A stretch of DNA of 64,000 bases from Lepidodermella squamata (GCA_047495785.1 JBLDXI010000016.1:806001-870000); one strand, 5' to 3'; positions 1-18,000 are shown, numbered from the stretch's first letter. The notes: generated from the sequence alone by a model not told the origin. Numbers and translations are program-made.

Positions 1-3000
1 CTACGTCCTGCTGCAAGAACTGCCCGAACAGTGGAATAACACGAAGAAGATTGCGATTACTGTCAAGCAACAAGTCGCGCCGCTTCAAGCCACTGAGGTT
101 AACAATATCAGGCGTAAAACAGCTGAATTCGACGTTGCTCAGTACAACTTCCGCGAGCACTTTCGAACAATTGAATTTTTCCGTTACGACTGCAAAACTT
201 ACTACCAAACGTTGGATAGGTACAATTTGACGATTCAAGCGATGGAGCGTGAAATGGCGACGCTCATCGACTCGGCTGGCCTATTTGAGGTTCAAGTTCC
301 GGACTACAAGCAGTTGAAAAATTGTAGGAAGGAGTTGAAATTGCTCAAGACATTGTGGGATTACATTGGCATTGTTCACTCGTCGATTGAGGATTGGAAG
401 TTGACGCCGTGGAAGAAAATCAACGTCGAGCAAATGGAGTATGTTAAAAATTCAAAATTTAATTTAAATTTCAACAGTGAATATTTTTCAAAAATTTAAA
501 ATTTAATTTTTAATTTTTTTTACCTAAATGTTTAAATTTTAAAATTCTTTATTTTGAAAAATTTGAAAAATTACGTGTTTAAAAGTTCAATGAAAATTAG
601 CATTTTTCCAAGAATTTTTTAATTTTTTATTGACCAAAATTATCGCTTTATGAAGGCTGAAACTGAACAAAATTTTGAGGGCAAAATTCTTTAATTTTTT
701 TTTTCGAAATGTTTTAAACTGTTCAAATCTCTAAAAAATAAGTAATATTTAATTATTTCCAGGCAAGACTGTAAGAAATTTGCCAAGGACATTCGCGGCT
801 TCGATAAGGAAATGAAGGCCTGGGATTGTTACAGCGGCGTGAATGCGACTGTCAACAACATGCTGACGTCGCTGAAGGCCGTCACCGACCTGCAGAATCC
901 GGCCATTCGCGAGCGCCACTGGCAGCAGTTGATGCAGACAACGGGCGTCAAGTTCATGATGGACGACGATACTACGCTCGCTGATTTGCTATCGCTCAAT
1001 TTGTACAAGTACAACGATGAAGTTGCCAATATTGTCGAACGAGCAACTAAGGAAATGGGTATGTAAAAAACTTTCTATAGAAATTTCAATAAAATTTGAA
1101 ATTATTTTGAAAATTTGAAATCAATAAAATGTCATTCATTTTCAGGTTTTTTTATTTTAAATAAGTCCTTTATATTTTCAAAGATTTTTGAAAATTGAAA
1201 ATTTCAACTTTAGTTTCAATTTCAATATATTTTTAAAATTTGCTGATGATTTTTCCTAGGTATGGAGAAGGTATTGCGCGAGTTGAATTCGACTTGGGCA
1301 GCCATGGAATTCGATCATGTTAAGCACCCGCGTACCGGGGTCACCCAGTTGCAGAGCCCGGAGAACCTTACGGACACGTTGGACGAAAATCAAGTCCAAC
1401 TGCAGAACATGATGACGAGCAAATTTATTGCCTTCTTCGAAACTGAAGTCCTATCGTGGCAACGCAAGCTGTCCACCGCTGATCAGGTTTGTTTAATTTC
1501 GCCTCAAAAATTTGAGGAAAAATGAAATTTTTATAATTCGATTTTTTGCTTTTTGAAAAAATTTAAGAATTTATGAATATTGTAAAGAAAACTTCCATTA
1601 AATTTTTAATTCGATTTTTTATTTTTGAAAATTTTTGAAAATTTTCTTTCAAAATCGCTTTGAAATTGATGTTTTGTTGGTTTTGGCCAGGTAATTTCGA
1701 TTTGGTTCGAAGTCCAACGAACTTGGTCCAATCTCGAGTCGATTTTCATCGGCTCGGAGGACATCCGCAAACAACTGCCTGAGGACTCGGCCCGATTCGA
1801 CGGCATTGACCGCGACTTCAAGTCCCTCATCACCGAAGTCGAGTCGAGCAGAAACGTCCTGGAAGCAACTGGCAAGCCGAAACTCATCGAACGCCTGGAG
1901 GAGATTCAAAAACGGCTGGCTCTTTGCGAAAAGGCGTTGGCCGAGTACATGGAGACGAAACGACTCGCCTTCCCTCGATTCTACTTCGTATCAACGACGG
2001 ATTTACTGGATATTCTATCAAACGGCAATGCGCCGGAAAAAGTTGCGAGGCATTTGGCCAAAATTTTCGACTCGCTCGCCTCGTTGACCTTCGACAAAGA
2101 TTCGAAGGGTAACAACACGAAACGCGCGCATACGATGCATGCCAAGGACGGCGAGACGGTATCGATGGCGAACGGGTGTGACTGCAACGGCGAGGTTGAG
2201 GTGTGGCTCAACCGGTTGTTGGATGAACAGCGAGCGACAGTTCGGCACTACTTGACGGATGCCGTTGCGTCGTACGAAGAAAAGGCGCGTGATGTTTGGG
2301 TATTTGAAAATCCAGCCCAGGTCGCGCTCACCGGCAGTCAAATCGCTTGGACTACTGAGGTAAATTTTTTATGAAATTAACGCTGGAAAATTGTTCAAGC
2401 TACAATAAAACTTGACCATTAATCGTTGGTATCATGGAGCATTCGAGGAAAAGAAGAATTCATTCAACCTAATCCTTTAATCAATCTAATCGAAACTGGA
2501 GGCAAATTTTAAAAATCTGAATTGCTCTGCGATTAATTGGTTTTTCAAACAAATTTGAATTTCTCTCAATGCTTTTTCAATTTTTGGAGCAATTTTCAAT
2601 TAGATTTGTTATTTCTGTAACAAAGTGAATTTATTGTTGTTGGCTTGCCACAGGCGCCATGTTTTTCTTACCTAATATTATTTAACCATCTGCGAATTAT
2701 ATTTGTGTCTAAGGTATGTATCCTTATCTAGTCGATCTTGTGTCTCAGGGCGCTTACGCGAAAGCTGTGCCCGTTATAACATGAATAATGAAAATTTAGA
2801 TAACAATTTTATAAATCTCGCAAATGAAACCAATTTCGCTAATTGGAAATCGAGAATAAACTTGATCTCAAAGTGAATTCGCCACGGGTATTTTCCTTTT
2901 GTTCTGTTTCTTAATATTTTTATTTTTCTCATCCTTCACCTTATTCTCATTGTAAGATTTCTTTTTCCGGCGAATTTCCGTTGATCAGCCTCATCCGAGG

Positions 3001-6000
3001 TCTTCCTCCGGGTGCAAACTACCCGAGCGGAGGAGTCTAACTATATATTTTGTTATTTGATCCTTCTTCGTCATAATCCAATGCGAAGAATTGTAAAATT
3101 GTGTACTTGGAATTCATTCGCAAGCGAACGGGAGTTCACGCAAAGAACAACTTTCTCCTACCAAATTCAAGTTTTGGCTGATGATTTTTGATATCATAAC
3201 ATGATATCTTTTTTATCAAAATAGATATAGGAGAAGAACATAATGAATATATAGATTGATTATAATTTTTATTTTTTTATATTGCAAAGGGCACAGCTTT
3301 CGCGTAAGCGCCCTGAGACACACGTTCAGGAGGGTTGTAAGGATACATACCTTAGACACAAATATAATTCGCAGATGGTTAAAGTTTCAAAGCACACCAA
3401 AATTTGGTCCACGTGGCAAGTCAATAATAATGAACTCATTTTAAAGAAGACAAAAACAAATGATTGAATAATACTTCACAGATGTGAATAGTTCACACAT
3501 ATTATAAAATCAATCATCAAATTAAAATTACTTATTGCCAAGTGTGCCACATCCTGACGCACTTGGCGCCAAAGTGGCAAACTTTGATGGTACCACGAGT
3601 AGGGAACAGAGGCTCGTTAGTACGGTACGCCAAGAAACGGCCCGCTGATCCCAGCAAATTCGGAATTCAATTTTTCCCACACCAATATATATTTTTGACA
3701 CGGTTTATTCTCGGAATACAAAAATACTGTATGCGTACTACTTTTCGCGGCAATCTTGAATTCGCGAATCGCCCCAAAAAAGAACATTTTTTATTTTCGC
3801 GAAATACTGTATACTGTTTCCGTAATTAGGTCAACCTGGCATTTGCCCGGCTTGAAGAAGGCTACGAAAATGCGCTGAAAGACTACAACAAGAAGCAAAT
3901 CGCTCAGCTGAACCAGTTGATTGCTCACCTGTTGACGAAGCTGGAACGCCAAGGCGATCGCCAGAAAATCATGACAATTTGCACAATCGACGTGCACGCT
4001 CGTGATGTTGTGGCTAAAATGATAACGGCCAAGGTTGAAAGTTCAGCGTCCTTTATGTGGGTGTCGCAGCTGCGCCATCGCTGGGACGAGGCCAACAAGC
4101 ACTGCATGGCGAACATTTGCGACGCCCAGTTCAGGTACGACTACGAGTACCTCGGCAATACGCCGCGTTTGGTCATCACGCCGCTGACGGATCGTTGCTA
4201 CATCACGCTGACCCAGTCGCTTCATTTGGTCATGGGTGGAGCTCCAGCAGGTGAGTAGAAGCAGTAAAAAATTGAAAAAATCACAAGGGATCGAAAATTC
4301 CAAAATAGCTTATGTCATGACCCTTTAAATCAATTCGACGATAGGAATAAAAAATGGGTCCAACCGGGCAAAATACCAATAAATTCCAAACCAGTTACCA
4401 TCGGGATATTTTTGGGTTGTCTTCGGTAAATTTCGGTTTTCTCCGGTGAAGTCGCGGAAAATCGATCGCGGGAAACCGAATCCGTTTCCATCGGGTTTTT
4501 CGGGTTTTCTTCGGTAAAATCGGAGGAAAAATAGCTGAATTTCTCGCGGAAAATTAGAAAAAGTCTGCGCCGAACTTTTGACCGAAGATAATTTTAATTT
4601 TTACCGTTTTCGACAATCAGCTTGACAAATAAGTTTTTAAACTATTTTTCACAAATTTAATTTTGAAGAAAAGCATGCAGTTTCTAAATCTTTCACCGAT
4701 TTTTTTTTACATTTTATTTTTATTCGGATTTTTCTAAAGCAATTTTTCAACATTTTTCTTGGCTATTATTTTAGGTCCTGCTGGTACTGGTAAGACCGAG
4801 ACGACTAAGGATTTAGGCAAGGCCCTCGGCATGATGGTCTACGTGTTCAACTGCTCGGAGCAGATGGACTACAAATCGATAGGTAACATCTACAAAGGCT
4901 TGGCGCAGTCCGGCTCGTGGGGCTGCTTCGACGAGTTCAACCGCATCTCCGTCGAAGTGCTGTCCGTCGTAGCCGTCCAGGTCAAATCCATCACGGACGC
5001 GATTCGGCTGAAGAGGCAGCGATTCAATTTCATGGGCGAGGAAATCAAACTGACGCCCACTGTCGGTCTCTTCATCACCATGGTAAATGATTTTAAAATA
5101 AGTAACCGAATTCTAAAATGAAAAAATTTATTATTGGTCTTATTCCATTAGGAAAGGGAAATAAATTTCAAATAAATTGCAAATTGAATTTCGGAGCAAT
5201 TTTTCTAATTTGAGATTTGAAATTTAAAATTTCAATAAAATTATAATTTTTACTTATTTTTGCTAATTTTTTCTAATTTGGAAAAAGTCGAAAAGCTCAA
5301 ACTATTCATGCTAAAATTTGAACTTTGGAAACCTCGCTATTCAAAATTTGAATTTGCCTTTTTTAGAAGTTGAAATTTTTCAAGATCGAAGATTTTTGAT
5401 AAATCATGTTAAATTTGAAAATTAAAATCGATTCGAAATCGCTGATGGTTCTTGGGAAATGAACTCGAACTGGGTCCTTCACGTCCTTGCTACAACGGAA
5501 ATTGAAAACCTTGAAACTATATTTCATTTTTTTCCTAAAATTTTATGAATGATTCATCTCAGCTGATGACTATTTTTCCTTAATCTAGAATCCTGGCTAT
5601 GCCGGTCGAACTGAGTTGCCTGAAAATCTGAAGGCTCTTTTCCGCCCGTGTGCCATGGTCGTCCCCGATTTCGATCTAATCTCTGAAATCATGTTGGTTG
5701 CCGAAGGTTTCATGGACGCCAAATTGCTGTCCCGAAAGTTCATCACCCTTTACAATTTGTGCCGAGAACTGCTTTCGAAACAAGACCACTACGATTGGGG
5801 CCTGCGAGCCATCAAGTCCGTGCTTGTCGTTGCCGGGTCGCTGCGACGTGGCGATCCAGACAGGCCCGAGGACCAAGTGCTCATGCGAGCTTTGCGTGAT
5901 TTCAACGTGCCGAAAATTGTCACGGACGATTTGCCTATTTTCTTGGGTTTGATCAAAGACCTGTTCCCGGGTCTTGATGTGCCGCGTAAGAAGAATCCGG

Positions 6001-9000
6001 AGCTTGAGCGCGATGCCAAGGAAGCGGCGTTGATGCAAAAATTACAGCCTGAGGATAATTTCGTTCTCAAAGTCGTTCAACTTCAAGAACTTCTCGAGGT
6101 AAAAAATACATATAATTTTTCAAGCTAAAGGCAAAAAATTGAAAAAATTGAATTGAGACTGGTTTTTCAAATAATCATTAATCAAAAAATGAATTGAAAT
6201 TTTTATAGCCATCCCAGGTCATTTTACGGAATCATGATGATGCTCCGGACAGACTTGACTAAACGTTCAGTCTCAGTAATAACATTTCAAAAATTTCAAT
6301 TTTCAAAATTGATTGAACTGAAAAGTACCGTATTTATTCGAAGGCTATTTTTGACCTTTATTATTTTCTAAAAGAAGAAAAAAATATTTCCTCTGAATTT
6401 TGAAATCATGAGAAGGCTTAATTAATTTCAATTTTTCAATTTTGACAAAATATTTCTTTCAAAAATTTGAAAAATGCACTCGACGAAAATACTCTGTCTA
6501 AACCATATTTTTCATTCGGGAAAATTGCTAATCCATGTAACTCGAAATTTTCTTAGCATTTTTCATAATTTCGTTTTAGCCTTCTAAAACGCGATTTAAT
6601 TTTTTATTTTCAACATGGAAAAATATTTCTTAGAATTTGCGCTAACCCGTGTTATTTTTTTCTTCTATTTAGGTCCGTCACTCAGTTTTCATCCTGGGCA
6701 ACGCTGGCACCGGCAAAACATCCGTCTGGAAAACTCTCCACAAAACGTGGCAAAACCGCAAAATGAAGCCAACAGCCGTTGATCTGGACCCGAAAGCCGT
6801 CTCCAACGACGAGTTGTTCGGCGTCATCAACCCGGCGACCCGCGAGTGGAAAGACGGCCTCTTCTCCACGGTCATGCGTGACCTGGCGAACCTGCAAGGC
6901 GACGGCCATCGCTGGATCATCCTCGACGGTGACATCGACCCAATGTGGATAGAATCCCTCAACACGGTCATGGACGATAACAAAATTTTGACCCTTGCGT
7001 CGAACGAGCGCATCCCACTGACCCCGCAGATGCGATTAGTCTTCGAAATTAACCACCTTAAAACCGCAACCCCGGCCACGGTATCTCGAGCCGGTATTCT
7101 CTACCTGAACCCGACCGATTTAGGCTGGGGTCCCTTCGTCGCCTCGTGGATTGACAAGCGAGAATTAACGACTGAAAAAGCGAATTTGACGATTTTATTC
7201 GACAAATACGTCCCGCCCTGCCTGATCGCCCTCAACAATCGGTTCAAGAAAATCACGCCCGTGGCTGAAATCAGCCACATTATGATGCTCTGCAACCTTC
7301 TCGAATGCATGCTCACCCCGGAAAACATCCCGCCAGATTCTTCGAAGGAGCTGTACGAGTTGTACTTCGTGTTCTGTTGCATCTGGGCGTTCGGCGGTTG
7401 TTTGGCTCAGGATCAGTTGACCGATTTTCGGGTTGAATTTTCAAAGTGGTGGACGTCTGAGTTTAAAACGATCAAGTTCCCAGTTCAAGGGCTGGTTTTC
7501 GACTACTTTATCGATCCTGAGGCGAAGAAATTCGAGTCGTGGACCAAACGGCAGGCCAAATTTGAGCTGGACCCTGAAATTCCGCTACAATCGACCCTTG
7601 TAAGTTTTTTTTCAGAATTTGGATATTTTTTTAATTTGAAAATTTGAAAAAATCTCAATTCATTAAAAACTGAACTTATTCATTTGATATTTGTTCTGAA
7701 AAAACATCCACAATTTTTTGAATATCGATTCCAATTTTACTGAGTTTTAAAAAATTTTAATATTTTTAAAAAATTCAAATTTTCCCTTTTTCAATTTTCA
7801 TAATATTTTCTAATTTTTCAAAAATAATCTTTTTTCAGGTGTCCACAATTGAAACTACCCGAATTCGGTATTTCTTGGATCTTTTGGTCGCTAAGCACCA
7901 CCCTGTTCTACTGGTCGGCAATGCCGGTACCGGTAAGACTGTAATGATCGGTGACAAGCTGCGTCAACTCAGCGATGCGTGGATGGTCGTTAACGTACCG
8001 TTCAACTATTACACCACCTCTGAGATGTTGCAGAAAGTCTTGGAAAAGCCGCTGGAAAAGAAGGCCGGCAAGAACTTCGGCCCGCCTGGCAACAAGCGTT
8101 TGATCTATTTCATCGACGATTTGAACATGCCTATGGTTGATAAATACTTCACGGTACAGCCGCATACCATTTTGAGGCAGTACCTGGACTACCACCATTG
8201 GTACGATCGGACAAAATTGTCCCTGAAGGTTAGTTTTAAAAAAATTTCAAATTTTTAAAAATTCGTGAAAATTCTGAAATTTCTAATTTCTAAATTTTCT
8301 TTGCTTTCCAGGAAATCAGCAATGTTCAATACGTCGCGTGCATGAACCCAACGGCCGGTTCCTTCACGATTACCGCCCGTCTACAGCGCCACTTCGCCGT
8401 TTTCGCCATCTCCTTCCCCGGCCAGGAAGCTCTCCAGACCATTTACACGTCAATCCTATCGCAGCACTTGTCCTCGAAAGGATTCCAAGTTCCTGTTATC
8501 AAGTACACGACGCAGCTCGTCAACGGAGCTCTATCACTCCATGCCCGTATTGGCCAACAATTCTTGCCCACGGCTCAGAAATTCCACTACGTTTTCAACC
8601 TGCGAGATTTGTCAAACATTTTCCAGGTAAATATTATCGGTTTTTTCTAATTGATTCGGTTTCAATGATTGATTTCTAACAGTCGATAATCGAATTTTCC
8701 AATAAATATTTATTTTCGATTATTAATGATTTTAAATTTCGATATTGTTATTTATCGATTATCGATTTTCATATCGATTTCATGATTGATTTTTATCGAT
8801 AATTTCTATTTCAGGGCATGCTGTTTGCCGGAGCTGAGTGCGCCAAGGTCCCACAGGATCTTGTCAGGTTGTGGCGCCACGAGTGCGATCGCGTGTACCG
8901 CGACAAAATGGCCGACGTCGCTGATTGCGAACTGTTCGACAAAATCGTCAAAGATCAGACGAAGAAATCGTTCGAAGAACTCGACGAAGCTGTCATCTCG

Positions 9001-12000
9001 CAGAAGCCCATGATCTACTGCCACTTCACGCAGGGAATGGGCGATGCCAAATACCTGCCAATCGCCTCAATGACTGATTTGGGCCGAATTTTGAATGACG
9101 CCATGTCGCAGTACAACGACCTTAATGCTGCTATGAATCTTGTTCTCTTCGACGACGCCATGTCCCACATTTGCAGAATTAACCGCGTTCTGGAGTCGCC
9201 ACGTGGTAACGCCTTACTAGTAGGTGTTGGTGGCTCAGGAAAGCAGTCCCTTGCGAGGCTGGCCGCGTTCATTTCCAGCTTGGAAGTGTTCCAAATCACC
9301 ATTCGAAAGGGCTACGGCATCGCTGATCTCAGGACAGATTTGGCGATGTTGTACCAGAAAACTGGCCTCAAGAACATTGGCATGATGTTTTTGATGACTG
9401 ATGCGCAAGTCGCAGACGAGCGGTTCCTTGTGTTGATCAACGACATGTTGGCATCGGGCGAAATTTCTGAGCTTTTCAGCGACGATGAAATGGAAAATGT
9501 GCTGGGATCGATGCGAGTTGAGGTTAAAGGCGCTGGAATGGACGACTCGCGTGAAAACTGCTGGACCTACTTTATTAACAAGGTACGCTTCACAGAGTAA
9601 TAATCATGAATATTTGGTATTTCAGATCCAAATCGACGACGATAACAAAAAAGAACACAATTTTCGGTGCATAAAAAAAACTGTATAAAAAGTTGCATAA
9701 CGTCAAGAAAAGATAATCATTTGGTCTTTTTGCTCTGAAGTTTGCTGAAATGTCGTTGCAAATTTGTCATTTTTGAACCATTTTAACAGAAAATTACGGC
9801 TAATGCATAAACATTCAGGCCAAGAAAAGAGGCGAGCATGAGAAGAAAAACGGTCATGTCAAAAGCTCTCGCACATGTGAAGCTCAGATGAAGGGGTGCT
9901 ATATTGACGATCTTTCTCATAAGTTCCTTATTACGAGCTGTTACCGTAACCATAGCAGCTTCATATAGGGCTAGAGCGCCTGTCATGCCGCTTAAAATTA
10001 GAATGTATTCAGCCATTAGTACAGACTCGCTTGTATCGGGAAGCTCCCCATGTATCTCTGATTGCGTGACGATTAGGCTTAGAAGAAGGGTCGCTGTGAA
10101 GGCTGGTCGATCTGGGATGCTTGGCTGAAGGATGAGAGATCCGAAAACCAGCGTTGTTATGATGCAACAAGGTGCAAAGCTATTGATAAGGTAAGGCCAA
10201 CTTTTTCGCGTGAAAGTGACTGTAAAACGGGCGTAGCTCGACGTGCCATTCCGCCTGAGTAAGGAAGTCGTTAAACCTCGCCCAGAGAACGCTTTCCCTA
10301 GTTCCCAAAGCTCGCTATCGAAGGATCCATCGAATGAAAGTCTTGTCAGCTGAAACTGTAGGTACTTTTCCGATTCATCTAGTACGAAGGTGAAATCACA
10401 CTGTTGGGAATCAAAGGGAAATTTGCGAAGTTTAAGGACACATTTCGATTTGATAACGCCATATCGCATCCAGTGGAAAAATAAGGTTCGATTCGGCACT
10501 GTCGGGTAGAAAACAGCTTGAGTTTGCTCTTCGAAGCCGCTCTTCATGTAGATGTCTGTTGAAGTATTTGCGAACTGCAGGCTTGGCACCCAAACATGTT
10601 GCGGATCCACTGCGTAGACGCGATCTGCTTCGTTGACGTTCGGGGCTGTAACCTGCCACGGGCAGTTGAAAACCGCCCATTGAACGGCCAGTCGAACACC
10701 GGCTGAGATTTCGCGAGCTTTGGCGTCGATGTCGAGCAGCGCGTTGAATTCCATCGAGATGTATATTTTCATGCCGTAATCAGGGGATCTGAAAAAGAAA
10801 AGCTCAGCTTGAGCCTCAAACTAACCAAATTCAACTCGAAATTTTCCCGATTCGATATTTCGATTTTATCCATTGTTGATTGATAACCCCTGAATCTGGC
10901 AATTTAAATTTTAGCTGCCTTTGAAAAGCTTGGCTACCCCGAAAGTTGGTTAAAATGGTTTTCAAAAATCGTGAAAACTCCATTCGATACCTGGTCGGTC
11001 TTTTCGAAATTTCTGAATTGGATTTAAGAAAATTCATTGTTTGTTTCTTGGCTGCAAAGTTCTCAAAATCTCGTACTCTCAAAAATTCTGAAAGCTTCAA
11101 TAATTGATGCAATTTAAAAGCCGTTCAGTCGCGCATTTCCACCTTAATAGCCTTCCAGCTAGTGTTTACTGTTTACTGCAACATAAATTATTGAACATGC
11201 ACAATACCTGACTTTTGGGGCGATGAACTCGCATGTCGTTATGTCCTCGATCGAAAGTAAAGGCATGATATATCCATCGATTAGGTTCGGAATCGGGAAT
11301 TCCGATGGATTCATCGCGAAATCGTAGCTCTCTACTTCGCGCGTTGTTCCAACTGATGCAGATGTTGAAATCGGAATCCTAAAACTTGAAGTCTCGGTAG
11401 ATGTTAGTGGCACCCCTGATGAAGATTGAGCTGAGCTGAAATCGGTCATTTTATCAATAATGAAGGGCGTTGGCGATGTTTCCGGTGATGTTGAAGTCGT
11501 TTCAACCGCGCCGCAGTTGTTCATTTTTACGTGATACACGTCCATGGTATCTGAATAAGCCCCGCTCTTCCCGCCCAAGCCGAATACCATCGTTTGTCCG
11601 GCATAAGGGCTTGAAATTTTCACTGATGATGTTATGTTCGAAAATGGTCCGATGCAAGTTCCATTTTGCAAGCATAATCCCAGCTACAGAATGGGAATTT
11701 ATTAGCATTAAATTCAATTTAAATATTGATAAGATCGAGTAGAAATGTCTCTGAAATTATGAAATTTTGCGAGAAAATACTTGGGAAACCCGAAGTTCGT
11801 TTTTTCGGAATTTTTATTTTTGGACCGGGTTTTTTGGAATTTTCCCGCTCTCCTTTATTAATTTCATGAGTCAATTTTCTGTATTTCAAGTTCCTTCTGA
11901 TTCCGAGGTCCAGCATTCGGTCCAATTTTAGACTTTCCGAACCCTTTTTCAATCTATTCTCTTGGGTTACCTTACTTACCGAAACGTTTGTGCCATCAAC

Positions 12001-15000
12001 CACCCGCAGTTGAACGAGAATAAAGTTTTGAAACCAAGGCATAGCTGGCAGCGTTTTTCGGACAAGGTCGATGCCCGTATCATTGGCTGTCTGTACCAAA
12101 GTAGCACTCAGTTGCCTGTAGATTGGGCTGAAGCGCACGTAGAGGCCGACAAAGCGACTTAAATCCACGCCAAAGTAATAAGCTGGGTCGCGTGAACAAC
12201 AAAATTGTATTCGTTTGATTCAGGAAAATCCTATACTTACCTTTATTCAAGGGTCTTGGAATCGAAGCGTTGTTCGCAATAAAAATCATGAACCCATCAG
12301 CGGTCTGGTTGTCTCGAGAGTCGATGTTCACCAAAACTTCGATGAAATAATCATCAATATCGAATTCCTAAAAATTGAGAATTAATTTTTTTTATTTCTT
12401 TAATAAATAAACTGTCTTGTTAGGTCTTTGCTAACAAATATGGGGTCTAACTTTTTTGTTCCAAAGCCCAGTGTCGCGCCTTATGATGCCTTCGGAAGAC
12501 AAACGAGTGGTATTTCCAGGTTGCCCTGTTGTGTTGAGATTCGGCATTGTTATGTAGTCCCAATAGGCCGGCCTATCAAATTCGTGGTTGATGAGGGACA
12601 TTTCCGGGACTAAAATACCGCATTGCAACACGCCTTGACCTTTAACAAGGTTGGATTCGATCAGAATAACGAGTAGGCAAAGCTGAGGTTCGAACATTCG
12701 CGCAACAATTCTCAAATTCCTGATCCGAAGAAAAATTAGAACTGCGAATTGTTCTCATGTCCTGCGCGTGAGATTTCGAATTTGTTTATCTCATGAAAAT
12801 GTTAATAGCTAGCTCTTGCTTGGCTTTTTTCTTGTTTTTCCTTGATCATCACACGATCATCTCATGAATAAATTGGTGAATGCCCAGGTCAAGTCAGAGT
12901 CCATCATTATTTATTCATGTCATGAGTTCGTTTCGAATATCGTAATCAAGTCGAATTCATCATACTATGATGATCATAGAATTTTTAATCTTTGCCGGCA
13001 AATTTCTATCTGGCCGTAAAACCCCGATAAAACTCGAAAAATCCGAGAATTTCGGAATTTTGTCGAAATTTTATTTAATGTAATTTTATAATTTTAGGTC
13101 CGCCGACTCCTGAAAGTCGTACTTTGCTTCTCACCCGTCGGCTCCACTCTACGTGTCCGAGGGCGTAAATTCCCAGCCCTGACCAATTGCACGCAAATCG
13201 ATTGGTTCCACGAATGGCCGGAGGATGCGCTTATCTCCGTATCCCGCCGCTTCGTCGACGACATCGAGCTGCTGAACACAGAGATGAAAGACTCAGTCTC
13301 GCAGTTCATGGCCTTTGTCCACAAATCCGTCAACGAACTCAGCCAAACTTACCTGGCTAACGACAAGCGCTACAACTACACGACCCCGAAGTCTTTCCTC
13401 GAGCAAATTTCGTTGTATAGACGTCTTCTAACCAAGAAATTCAGCGAGTTACAGCAAATGAAACAGCGTTTAGAAAACGGTGTCGAACGCCTGAAATCAG
13501 CATCGGAACAGGTCGCTGATCTCAAGGATAAACTCAAGGCCCAGGAGGTTGTAGTCCGCGAGAAGAACGCCGAAGCTGAGCGTTTGATCAAAATTGTAGC
13601 AGAGGAGGCTGAAAAAGTCAACAAAGAAAAGGAAATTGCGGATGTTGAAAAGGTGAAAGTCGCTGCGATTACTGAGGAGGTATCGAAGAAGCAGCAAGAT
13701 TGCCAGGCTGATCTAGCCAAGGCCGAGCCGGCTTTGATTGCGGCTCAGGAGGCGCTGAACACCCTGGATAAGAATAACTTGACTGAATTGAAGTCTTTCG
13801 GCTCGCCGCCGGCTGCTGTTTCAAACGTAACAGCTGCTGTGATGGTGTTGCTAGCCCCGGGTGGTAAAGTCCCGAAGGATAGATCGTGGAAGCAGAGCAA
13901 AATCATGATGGGTGCGGTCGATAAGTTTTTGGAGCAGCTGAAGACCTACGACAAGGAGCACATCCATGAGAATGCTTACAAGGTGCGTTTTTTCTCGAAA
14001 AAATATCAAATCAAGATTTTGGATCTATTTAACATGGATCAAATTCTATCGTAAAAAATAACTATTTTTTGTCGAGATCAAATCAAGATCAAATGAGGTG
14101 TTTTGTTGAGATTTGATGCAAATTTGATCTTGCTGCTTTGATCCAAAACTTTCGAAAAAATCGCGAATTTTTATTTGATCTGAATTTGATTTATTGATTT
14201 ATTGAATTATATTCCTTATTTTGTATTTATAGGCTTCGATGGAATACATCAAGAACCCAGATTTCAACCCAGATTTCATCAAAGGCAAATCACTTGCCGC
14301 CGGTGGTCTATGCGCCTGGGTCGTTAATATCATCAAGTTCTACGATGTCTACTGCGAGGTCGAGCCGAAGCGTATCGCTTTGGAGAAGGCCAACGAAGAG
14401 TTGAAACAGGCCCGCGACAAATTGGCCGGTCTTCAGGCCCGTATTGCTGTTCTCGAGGAGTCGAAAGCTCGCCTACAGGCCGAGTATGAGCATGCTTCGA
14501 ATGAGAAACGCAAATGCGAGGAAGAAGCCGAGACTACTTTCAAGGTATTTTTCGTTCGCTTTTCGTTTATATTTCTTTGTTGCATAGGAACCTGGTAAAT
14601 TAAAAAATGTCGAATTTTTGACAGCCACGATTTTCAAGATTTTTCCTGAGTTTTGTTCTTTATAAAAATCCTGAAAATAACTCGGAAAATGGAATAAATA
14701 TTCTGATACAGTTTTTACTATATTTCTTTATTTTCTCTCTTTTCAAGACAATCGAGCTGGCTAATCGCTTCGTCAGCGGTCTCGCCTCAGAAAACGTTCG
14801 TTGGTCCGAGAACATCCAACGTTTCGAGGAAGAAGAAAAATTCATCCCAGGCGATGTCCTTCTCCTCACCGCCTTCATTTCCTACGTCGGCTACTTCACC
14901 AAAAACTACAGAGTCGACTTGATGAACAAATATTGGATCCCGTTCTTAACTGGCGGCGTGAAATACCCGATCCCAATAACACCAGACGCCGACCCGCTGC

Positions 15001-18000
15001 GACTCATCGTCGATGATGCGAACATTGCTGAGTGGCAGAATCAAAACCTGCCCGCTGATCGCGTTTCGATCGAAAACGCTGCTGTCTTACTGAACTGTGA
15101 TCGCTGGCCTTTGATCATCGACCCGCAGCTACAGGGCATCAAATGGATCAAAACGAGATACGGCGAGGATCTAAAAGTGATCAGATTGGGCCAGAAGGGC
15201 TATTTAGATACCCTGGAACGCGCCATTTCAGCCGGCGATGTTGTTTTCATTGAAAATATCGGCGAGTCGATTGAGCCGGTGTTGAACTCAGTCCTAGGTC
15301 GTAATACGATCAAAAAGGGCACGGCGATCAAAATCGGCGAGAAGGAGGTTGAATACAATCCGAAATTCCGGCTGATCCTTCAGACTAAACTTGCGAACCC
15401 GCATTACCAGCCTGAAATGCAGGCCCAGACTACGCTGATCAACTTCACGGTAACTCGAGACGGTCTCGAGGAGCAGCTGCTAGCCTCTGTCGTCGCTAAG
15501 GAACGGCCTGATCTCGAAAAAATGAAGTCTGAATTGACGAGAAAACAAAACGAGGATAAAATCACGCTGAAACAGCTTGAAGATGACTTGTTGAAAATGC
15601 TCTGGTCCGCTCAGGGTAATTTCCTCGGGAATTACGCATTGGTCGAGAATTTGGAGCGGACAAAGCGAACGTCGTCTGAAATTGAAGAGCGAGTGCGTGA
15701 GGGCAAAGTGACTGAGGTGAAAATTAACGAGGCGAGGGAGTTGTACCGAGTTTTGGGCGCCCAGGCGTCGCTCGTCTACTTCTGCATGAACGATCTGTGG
15801 CAGATCAATCCGATGTACCAGTTCTCGTTGAAGGCCTTCAGAACGGTTTTCGAAAAAGCTATCGACAGGTTAGTGAGGCTTCATTTAATTTATATTATTT
15901 TTGAAATAAAGAGCGCAGCTTTCGCTTTAGCGCCCTGGGTCGCCTAGAGAATTGGTGATGATACATACCTTAGACACAAATTTAAATTCGCAGATGGTTA
16001 ATTATCTTGACATCAACACTTTGAGAGCCTTCAAAAATCTTGAATGATCTAAGCCTAGCGTACAATTAACCACGCAAATTTTTAGTCAGTACTGAGAATT
16101 TAATGTATACAGAGTCAACTGATCGATTCTCGCTACGTTGATTTTGAATTACATTCCAAAATCTTTTACAAATCTTGAATTAATGAATTTTTTTAAAATG
16201 AATTCCTTATGAAGAAGTTAATTTAATATTATTCCATGCTCATTTAAATATTGCATTGTTCGGTCGCCTGACATTTGAGTCCCGCGACACTTGCGCCCCG
16301 ACAATTGAGTACCGACATTTGCGCCCAGGTTTAACTTGCGCCCGACGACATTTGCGCCCATTTATAAAAATAATAAATTTATTTCAACTTGCGCCCAAGC
16401 TGGCGACACTTGCGTCCAAAAACACTTCCGCCCCGGACTCAACTGTCGCCGAAATTAAATAAATAGATAGATAGCATAAACAACACAACGGGGTAGAGGT
16501 TAGAAATGTGGTGACCAATTTCCATTTTTGAATGCTATTTTGGGGTCCACAACCCTCTGGTTGTTTCACCGACTTCCATTTAGGGGTAACGAAAACCGTT
16601 CGTTATCGTCGTGAACAGAATTTTCTTCATCAATTTTCTCTCCCGAATCCGAAGCTGAAGTGAAAACCGCATCATAATTCCTCTTGGTTCGGAGGTATTG
16701 AAATAATGCGAGGCGAGAAATTAGGTACGGCGACAAAACAGCAACTTCGCGAAACAGCAAATGCGACGAAACAGCAAATTTTTAATTTCGCGACAAAACA
16801 GCGAAAACTTACTATGTAAAAGCTTACTATGTAAAAGATGCATCGTGTTTCTGCTGTTATGCCGCAAGTTGAAAAAGTTGCTGTTTTGTCGCGTTTGCTG
16901 TTTTGTGTATTTGCTGTTTTGACGGTCTGCCGTAATATTTGGCACAACAAAATATAACTATAACACGTAACAACGTAATATAACACGTAACACGTAACAA
17001 AATATAACTATAACAGCGAGCAAATTCGGAATAAAGCTGGGCGCAAGTGTCGCAGATGATTGGGCGGAAATGTCGCGGGCTGAACTCAAGTGTCGCCGGG
17101 CGCTTCTGTCGTGTTTGCAAATGTCGCCCCTGAATATTTTAGTTTGGGCGCAAATGTCTCGTACTCAAGTGTCGTTTTTAAAACGGGGCGCAAGTGTTTT
17201 TGGGCTCATTTGTCGGGGCGCAAGTGACGGGGCTCAAGTGTTGCGGTACTCATTTGTCGGCACACCCATTGTTCTCTATTTGATTGCCAATAAGGACATC
17301 ACATTGCACAGTGCCTGTTGTACTTGTGAGCAAAAGATTTCTAATTTGAAACCAAATTGCCTGTTTGAATACTCATAAAGATTGTCTTAGTCTTAGGTTG
17401 TCTTTCATTTGCGCAAGTAATACATGTGTGTATAAGGTATGTACGGTAGCAAATTTTCAATCATCTGAGCGCCTTAGCTTTGCGTTTTACGCGCTCTTGA
17501 ATTTCTCTAATATTTCTTACGGATTTATTTAATAACGTCAATTAATTTCTGATTTTTCGTCTTTTAGGGCTGAACCAGCTGAAGATTTGAAGGAGCGAGT
17601 CAATAATTTGCAAGACTGCATTACGTACTCGATATGGCTGTACACAACTCGAGGCCTGTTCGAGAAGGACAAGCTCATCTTCACCAGCCAGATGACCTTC
17701 CAGATCCTACTCCAACAAAAGGAAATCCTCCCCTTGGAACTAGATTTCCTCCTCCGATTCCCGATTCAAGTCAACGTTACATCACCTGTTGATTTCCTGA
17801 ATCACACGAATTGGGGCGGTATCAAGGCCCTGGCTGCAATGGAAGAGTTCAAAAATCTCGACCGCGACATTGAAGGCTCGGCGAAGCGTTGGAAGAAATT
17901 TGTCGAGTCTGAAATTCCTGAGAAGGAAAAATTCCCGCAGGAATGGAAAAACAAAACCGCTCTACAGCGGCTGTGCATGATGCGAGCGTTGAGGCCTGAT

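Follow-up and report, generated by a model that had tools for sequence, protein, structure and literature searches.

This study concerns a gene of Lepidodermella squamata that is predicted to encode a Cys-loop receptor subunit with a large extra domain, here called the head, at its N-terminus. The gene lies in a stretch of 64,000 nucleotides (GCA_047495785.1 JBLDXI010000016.1:806001-870000), here called the window, and all positions are given in window coordinates. In order from the N-terminus, the predicted chain has a signal peptide, a head of around 225 amino acids (aa), a stalk of 62 aa, a segment of around 40 aa that precedes the ligand-binding domain (LBD), here called the pre-LBD segment, and the body of a pentameric ligand-gated ion channel (pLGIC). 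To all appearances the gene is a genuine member of a clade of eukaryotic, headed Cys-loop channels not described so far. Our overall reading, which we regard as probable, is of a "headed" Cys-loop subunit encoded by one gene, with an L-type-lectin-like head, in a family whose heads have been swapped.

Cys-loop receptors are among the best-studied membrane proteins. To our knowledge, those of eukaryotes are taken to start directly at the LBD, and accessory N-terminal domains have been discussed for bacterial homologues only. A full-text literature search found no description of a Cys-loop receptor or pLGIC with a lectin, laminin G or comparable N-terminal head in eukaryotes. The first-pass annotation of the window, which was made from the sequence alone, had stated that no fusion with an L-type lectin was known, and the same search turned up no paper describing one. 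If a eukaryotic clade carries heads of the C-type lectin, LamG or L-type-lectin-like kinds on mucin stalks, the range of designs known for the superfamily would become wider. Such a clade would also offer a natural system for communication from an accessory domain to a gate, and would suggest sensors for macromolecular rather than small-molecule ligands. The locus described here adds a member that contains introns, a third kind of head, and evidence based on homology that head and channel are one gene.

The gene model

The list of open reading frames (ORFs) for the window contains five minus-strand pieces from 9783 to 12715. Splicing of the five minus-strand exons gives a coding sequence of 2058 nucleotides, with a continuous frame and matching phases. 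The donors of the four introns are GTTAGA, GTAAGT, GTAAGT and GTATTG, and every acceptor ends in AG. The features of the gene are as follows.

9783..12697, minus strand: whole coding region, five exons, 685 aa plus stop (rebuilt gene model, introns all GT-AG)
12452..12697, minus strand: exon 1, with the start codon, the signal peptide (aa 1 to about 21, 12635-12697) and the first strands of the head
12241..12367, minus strand: exon 2, head segment bearing the Ala-Asp-Gly (ADG) block (ADGFMIFIA; aa 103-112, 12278-12307)
11980..12182, minus strand: exon 3, head segment, with VRFSP at the place of the metal-binding VEFDT strand of L-type lectins
11208..11683, minus strand: exon 4, with the last 57 or so aa of the head (11510-11683) and the stalk (aa 251-312, 11324-11509)
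within 11208..11683, minus strand: 3' part of exon 4, with most of the clade-specific pre-LBD segment, including the invariant Cys (aa 343)
9783..10788, minus strand: exon 5, with the end of the pre-LBD motif, the LBD and the Cys-loop (aa 467-481, 10398-10442)
within 9783..10788, minus strand: C-terminal part of exon 5, with M1-M4 (9789-10196), an M3-M4 loop of 25 aa and the stop codon

The first-pass annotation had proposed a chain of 685 aa from five exons, and the gene rebuilt here is identical to it in length and motifs. The division into five ORF pieces is confirmed, the head motifs that it quoted are found where it had placed them, and its architecture of signal peptide, head of around 225 aa, Ser/Thr stalk and full Cys-loop pLGIC has held up. 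A hydrophobic stretch at aa 6-24 fits a signal peptide. The stalk consists of 44% Ser and Thr and 8% Pro.

The channel body

From both sequence and model, we are certain that the gene encodes a complete Cys-loop pLGIC body. Exon 5 matches the Pfam domain Neur_chan_LBD with an E value of 1.5e-12 (47.9 bits, cut-off 26); the Neur_chan_memb domain alone scores 16 bits, below its cut-off of 28.1 bits. Among PDB sequences the best match is the alpha7 nicotinic acetylcholine receptor (nAChR), with E 7.4e-15. AlphaFold2, run with an alignment of 19 sequences, generates a model with a predicted local distance difference test score (pLDDT) of 83.3, consisting of ten strands and four helices, the helices lying at exon-5 residues 197-333. 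When this model is compared with the PDB using Foldseek, the alpha7 nAChR is again found (E 5.6e-23, template modelling score 0.71-0.76), followed by other nAChR, glycine, GABA-A and ELIC chains.

The Cys-loop is C467-x13-C481 and contains FPFD. Both of its Cys, its Pro and its Asp are invariant in 19 members of the clade. A hydrophobicity plot has three strong segments in the C-terminal third, corresponding to M1, M3 and M4, with the amphipathic M2 falling below the cut-off used. In the alignment with alpha7, pore positions -1', 0' and 9' are occupied by Asp, Arg and Leu, respectively, and the 0' Arg and 9' Leu are invariant in the clade. This is the pattern of cation channels, and the pore is therefore probably cation-selective. 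The loop-D Trp, the W-x-P of loop A and the pre-M1 Arg are also conserved. The position of the loop-B Trp is a gap in the alpha7 alignment, and loop C has no Cys pair. Because these are lacking, the classical acetylcholine pocket is, as judged from the alignment, not conserved.

The body is thus best compared with the nicotinic-type Cys-loop receptors of animals, with human alpha7 nAChR as the best solved match. The two share a β-sandwich LBD, a C-x13-C loop with FPFD, four transmembrane helices, a 9' Leu and an acidic residue at -1', at 18-19% identity in the Foldseek structural alignment. They differ in that the gene described here has around 350 extra N-terminal residues, comprising head and stalk, and a short M3-M4 loop (25 aa), and in the loop-B and loop-C residues noted above.

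Head and channel as one gene

The assignment of head and channel to one gene is supported by homology, and not by RNA. Taken by itself, exon 5 lacks a signal peptide. Its alignment with alpha7 begins at chain residue 28 of that protein (51 in constructs that keep the signal peptide), and the N-terminal part of the LBD must therefore derive from further upstream. In exon 4 a single ORF runs from the final strands of the head through the stalk into the pre-LBD motif, and so links all parts of the gene. The motif at its 3' end, F-P-I-P ... I-P ... D-I ... C-E-F, directly precedes the LBD in the closest relatives, and its Cys is invariant in an alignment of 14 members (A4). Splicing of 11208 to 10788 yields a Cys-x8-[A/S/G]-Pro spacing identical to that of the relatives P0152, P0001 and P0012, in which the sequence is uninterrupted at this motif. 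Within the head, the local match to the L-type lectin profile described below crosses the junction of exons 1 and 2 ungapped.

It could be argued that the model has merged two genes, with exons 1-4 encoding a secreted protein of lectin and mucin parts and exon 5 being a channel gene of its own. This would fit with the lack of an RNA joint over 11208/10788, and with the presence of an in-frame Met near the start of exon 5 (aa 356). However, such a channel gene would be left with neither a signal peptide nor the N-terminal part of its domain, the pre-LBD motif of the clade spans the junction with exact spacing, there is no stop in exon 4 ahead of the donor, and relatives have head, stalk and channel in single ORFs. 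We consider two separate genes very improbable indeed, and the idea was rejected. The fusion proposed in the first-pass annotation is supported by the spacing of the pre-LBD motif over 11208/10788; the RNA joint that it had called for was not seen in X1, the RNA-labelled run discussed below.

Relatives and the headed clade

Relatives were sought in a HMMER pass over 1.84 billion representatives. The best matches have 33-39% identity, with nothing above 39%, and neither the window's own protein nor a close orthologue is present among these representatives. The 20 matches whose origin was looked up all come from environmental assemblies (19 from ENA and one from Logan). More than 150 aa are found ahead of the channel body in 19 of 161 relatives whose proteins were collected for this count. 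An extension of about 100 aa or more is present in 11 of the 20 best matches, many of the extensions having a Ser/Thr/Pro-rich stretch, and several of the proteins are complete with signal peptides.

Some of the heads can be identified. In the environmental eukaryotic contig L088 there is a stop-free stretch of 661 codons (1297-3279, plus strand) encoding a Lectin_C domain (E 1e-7, 33 bits against a cut-off of 22.6), around 155 aa of poly-Thr/Pro, the pre-LBD Cys motif and Neur_chan_LBD. The relative P0033 has three Laminin_G_3 domains (6.4e-16) ahead of the LBD. P0015, P0017, P0020 and P0026 have weak LamG_3 matches, and P0014 has an EGF match. P0152 is a single ORF of 812 codons (L001 637-3075) encoding two head domains followed by a Thr run and the channel, and a signal-peptide exon lies upstream of it, behind a short intron. 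The ORF of the best match, P0001, extends upstream in frame through more than 200 aa rich in Thr, Ser and Pro as far as the edge of the contig (L087:1-606, plus strand); this mucin-like sequence implies that the database protein of 387 aa is a truncated call. There are also members without a head (for example P0008 and P0018), in which the signal peptide comes directly before the pre-LBD motif.

As far as can be judged from these sequences, the arrangement of a head on a mucin stalk followed by the channel is a trait of the family, because the relatives carry all three parts, including in single ORFs, and there are bona fide lectin-family domains among the heads. By its pre-LBD Cys, fixed spacing, stalk and head, the window gene is to be counted as a member of this clade of headed pLGICs. 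Close parallels are L088, P0033 and P0152, which come from environmental eukaryotes, share the pre-LBD Cys motif, and likewise have a head, then a Thr/Ser stalk, then the channel. Their channel bodies are the nearest relatives among the 1.84 billion representatives, at 27-33% identity. They differ from the window gene in having few introns or none, and in their heads.

The heads of the relatives are not detectably homologous to the window head, which weighs against our overall reading. A word search with residues 1-420 of P0152 found no head homologues, and nor did jackhmmer over all fetched proteins and 1568 ORFs. Pairwise z-scores between heads are at most 3.1. A scan of metagenomes with the channel profile gave 80 distant loci, none with a head like that of the window gene, and PDB searches with the heads of the relatives gave only noise. 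The gene probably belongs to a large and fast-evolving family in which heads are swapped between lectin-type folds.

Some further features of the relatives can be added. A further ORF of 164 aa lies just upstream of the L088 gene (802-1293), with no Pfam match. Two genes with Neur_chan_LBD are found 4.5 kb apart in L084, an environmental contig (6001-7761 and 12237-13346), with unannotated ORFs of 409 aa and 549 aa between them, and the pair may be a tandem array of headed channels. P0152, P0154, P0156 and P0001 come from the same sample. P0019, P0024, P0039 and P0055 have two to four Neur_chan_LBD matches per chain of 870-1120 aa, which would make them either concatenated tandem genes or true multi-domain subunits.

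The head domain

With eight N-x-S/T sites, the head could be heavily N-glycosylated. It has four Cys (26, 196, 202 and 249), and is bracketed by Cys26 and Cys249. It had been proposed in the first-pass annotation to be an L-type lectin domain, related to the legume lectins, ERGIC-53/VIP36 and the bacterial domains PF18483/PF00139. Searches of Pfam, Atlas and PDB sequences covered single head exons or pieces of them, and the whole spliced head was compared using scripts.

For the latter, bacterial L-type lectin genes were retrieved with a back-translated VAVEFDT[Y/F] pattern, and the 88 ORFs that also have an ADG-type motif were kept. A profile of 242 states was generated from 83 of these 88, with six samples validated by Pfam as PF18483, PF00139 and PF03388. 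A first statistic, based on overlap alignment, was discarded because it degenerated to end overlaps, and hmmalign deleted most of the profile states. Using hmmsearch, positions 55-97 of the profile are aligned with aa 74-115 of the head, over the exon 1/2 junction and through TADGF, with a score of 7.6 bits, which was reached by one of 3000 shuffled sequences. In a profile-global alignment the head scores 7.9 bits, compared with -18 ± 5.8 for shuffles (z 4.4 with 400 shuffles and 4.5 with 4000), and this score was reached by one shuffle in 4000 (p about 5e-4). The head also outscores 504 of 506 natural segments of 228 aa; the two that score higher include one LamG_3 head. Decoys give z-scores of -1.3 (a pLGIC domain profile), 0.0 (a transmembrane profile) and 1.4 (the reversed lectin profile), and the gene's own LBD gives -0.3 against the lectin profile. 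The motifs found in both the traceback and hhalign are, in order, R-L-S, G-L-W-N-K, F-x-I-E-V, T-A-D-G-F, Y-F-G...V-R-F and F-G-L-G-G-K-S-G. In domain size, motif order and position of the ADG block the head is like an L-type lectin, and its colinear fit to the 83-domain profile is weak but specific.

The Atlas language-model features point in a similar direction, all scores being below the 0.9 line of the tool and thus serving as leads only. The exon-4 piece is near Lectin_legB (0.88) and Lectin_leg-like (0.87). The exon-2 piece is near TSP_C, DUF1349, DUF1961 and calreticulin, which the tool reports as sharing a clan; we take this to be the concanavalin A (ConA) clan (CL0004). The exon-3 piece gives unrelated matches, which look like noise.

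A number of results weigh against the L-type reading. Pfam, including PF00139, PF03388 and PF18483, gives no match to any head exon or sub-piece at E values up to 10. No PDB L-type lectin is matched by any exon piece in phmmer, and exons 1-3 have no match there. The exon-4 piece has a borderline phmmer match to the three-domain, jacalin-type lectins of Parkia, with a summed E of 4e-7 but per-domain values of 0.3-1.8, and the match covers just 45 residues. The signal in the profile comparison comes mostly from one block of 40 residues, and when the 15-residue ADG block is masked z falls to 1.6 (64 of 1000 shuffles, p = 0.06). With hhalign, P = 0.033 and the probability is 1.5%. The profile's training set was itself chosen for the ADG-type motif, and the L-type hypothesis was picked by the reader of the first-pass annotation after seeing that motif, which calls for caution. 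A single-sequence AlphaFold2 run on the head of a relative (P0152:180-425) gave pLDDT 30 and no confident fold.

The binding residues are also altered. In the traceback and hhalign, which is a weak alignment, VRFSP is aligned with the metal-binding VEFDT, so that the Glu and Asp are replaced, and the Asn of the loop is unrecognisable. The first-pass annotation had suggested just such a replaced metal loop. The Asp of the ADG loop that acts as a sugar ligand is retained, with TADGF aligned with gADGi of the profile. With neither the Glu nor the Asp that bind metal in L-type lectins, the head is doubtful as a classical sugar binder, and from the alignment it seems unlikely to have retained this activity.

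An alternative is that the architecture is real and the head is some other β-rich or novel domain, for example one with a jacalin-like C-terminal part, its resemblance to the ADG region being due to chance or convergence. This would account for the failure of the head exons to match Pfam or any PDB L-type lectin, for the Parkia match of exon 4, for the weight of the ADG block and the poor hhalign P value in the profile comparison, and for the unrelated Atlas matches of exon 3. Yet two separate exon pieces fall in the ConA clan by their Atlas features, and the colinear L-type fit is specific when set against the decoy and reversed profiles. Moreover, the Pfam Jacalin model does not match the head exons, the length of 225 aa suits an L-type domain, a jacalin prism having around 140 aa, and ConA-clan heads are found at Pfam significance in the relatives. 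We regard a head of some other kind as rather unlikely.

We take the head to be, most likely, an L-type-lectin-like (ConA-type) β-sandwich in degenerate form, which would have kept the sugar-loop Asp of Ala-Asp-Gly and lost the metal-binding residues. On the sequence comparisons, a ConA-type fold of any kind is fairly likely, and an L-type-lectin-like sandwich in particular has slightly better than an even chance. The L-type lectin label is plausible and weakly supported: the colinear motif order agrees with that of the first-pass annotation and the ADG Asp is kept, but no head exon matches an L-type lectin in Pfam or the PDB, and the signal comes mostly from the ADG block.

Two other identities were considered for the head and rejected. 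A C-type lectin has the wrong size, and the WIGL-type motifs are absent. A DeCLIC-like domain shows no similarity, and no exon piece has a PDB match to DeCLIC. It is worth adding that aa 194-241 (11540-11683, minus strand) contain the pattern G-P-F ... S-x-P ... V-x-G-x-G-G-x-x-G-x-Y-x-D, which has a borderline resemblance to the C-terminal sugar-loop region of jacalin-type lectins such as the Parkia lectins and griffithsin.

Coding status and expression

Two sequencing runs bear on the status of the gene. X1 is labelled as RNA ("RNA?") and has low depth over the gene, with exons and introns covered alike. X2 resembles DNA of a close relative and is around 98% identical over 11040-12637. The substitution counts for X2 refer to the listed differences only, there being 36 further ones. 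On this basis the head codons have seven synonymous and three non-synonymous differences, the latter conservative, and the stalk codons five of each. The ratio in the head supports its reading frame, which looks to be under selection; that in the stalk suggests that the stalk is free to vary. The sole listed indel on the X2 contig over exons 1-4 lies inside intron 4.

Shallow as it is, X1 weighs against the gene model in one respect: it has no transcript joint at any splice site of the channel gene, including 11208/10788. The splice that an X1 contig does confirm is that of the host dynein gene (9580 to 13096), described below. The locus might then belong to a family that duplicates rapidly and, although it looks intact, be unexpressed or in decay, having come to lie in a dynein intron by accident. 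The missing RNA proof of expression and the neutral pattern of the stalk (5 synonymous to 5 non-synonymous) would suit this. However, 685 codons are open over five exons with canonical splice sites, the head has the conservative pattern of substitution given above, the sole listed indel over exons 1-4 is in an intron, and every residue that is invariant in the clade has been retained. A decaying locus therefore appears improbable.

Short X1 contigs over window 10587-13276 also have many joints between "opposite strands", around 100 nucleotides apart. These look like fold-back artefacts of the library or assembly rather than biology.

Possible functions of the head

N-terminal domains are found in some prokaryotic pLGICs, and that of DeCLIC is the only one partly characterised (2025 DeCLIC paper, PMC12664993). 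Heads of the lectin or laminin G kind are unmentioned by Jaiteh 2016. The window gene resembles these proteins (DeCLIC and the class of Tasneem 2005) in having an accessory extracellular domain N-terminal to the LBD. In DeCLIC this domain affects gating (PMC12664993, PMC9897478). The window gene differs in being eukaryotic, with a Cys-loop and introns, in having a head that is unrelated in sequence, and in that the head is joined by a mucin-like stalk and not packed on the domain.

We hypothesise that in the assembled pentamer five heads would project above the channel, each on a flexible stalk that is O-glycosylated, and would bind a ligand that is macromolecular or lies on a surface, either glycan or protein. 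That the channel is gated by glycans, as implied by the term "lectin-gated", is speculation.

The heads may instead be passive, serving as a tether to matrix or cells or as a module for clustering or trafficking, with gating by a small diffusible ligand or ions at the usual inter-subunit site and not by whatever the head binds. The pLGIC body is complete and conserves the Trp of loop D, the W-x-P of loop A, the pre-M1 Arg and the 9' Leu; a long flexible mucin stalk would transmit conformational change poorly; the site for sugar and metal is degenerate; and P0008 and P0018 have the same pre-LBD motif and no head. All of these favour a passive head. On the other hand, with the loop-B Trp and the loop-C Cys pair missing, no known agonist site is recognisable, and the N-terminal domain of DeCLIC does influence gating (PMC12664993). 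We regard a passive head as a possibility that deserves to be taken seriously, if a doubtful one.

A more far-reaching proposal is that these proteins act as ionotropic receptors for patterns or contact: glycans or surface proteins, bound in a multivalent manner by exchangeable heads of lectin type, would drive or tune the gate. The ligands would come from food, microbes, mates or matrix, and the family would have diversified in the manner of an innate-immune or chemosensory repertoire. We consider this distinctly unlikely. If true, a eukaryote would be coupling the recognition of macromolecules straight to a membrane current, which would be new.

Genomic setting

The channel gene lies antisense inside an intron of another gene.

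9581..13095, plus strand: host intron of a dynein heavy-chain gene, with the channel gene antisense inside (RNA contig joint 9580>13096, GT..AG; Pfam flanks)

This intron has 3515 nucleotides and splits the AAA_8 (D4) module of the dynein. Pfam analysis of the flanking plus-strand ORFs identifies AAA_8 and AAA_lid_1 upstream, and AAA_8 and MT downstream. A second copy of the product was not found within the window by tblastn, there are no Rfam matches in 9000-13500, and there are no long direct repeats in 2500-17600. On the minus strand, around 25 nucleotides before the ATG of the channel gene (window 12700-12740), there is a pyrimidine-rich tract ending in AG (TTTTTCTTCGGATCAG), which could be a trans-splice acceptor.

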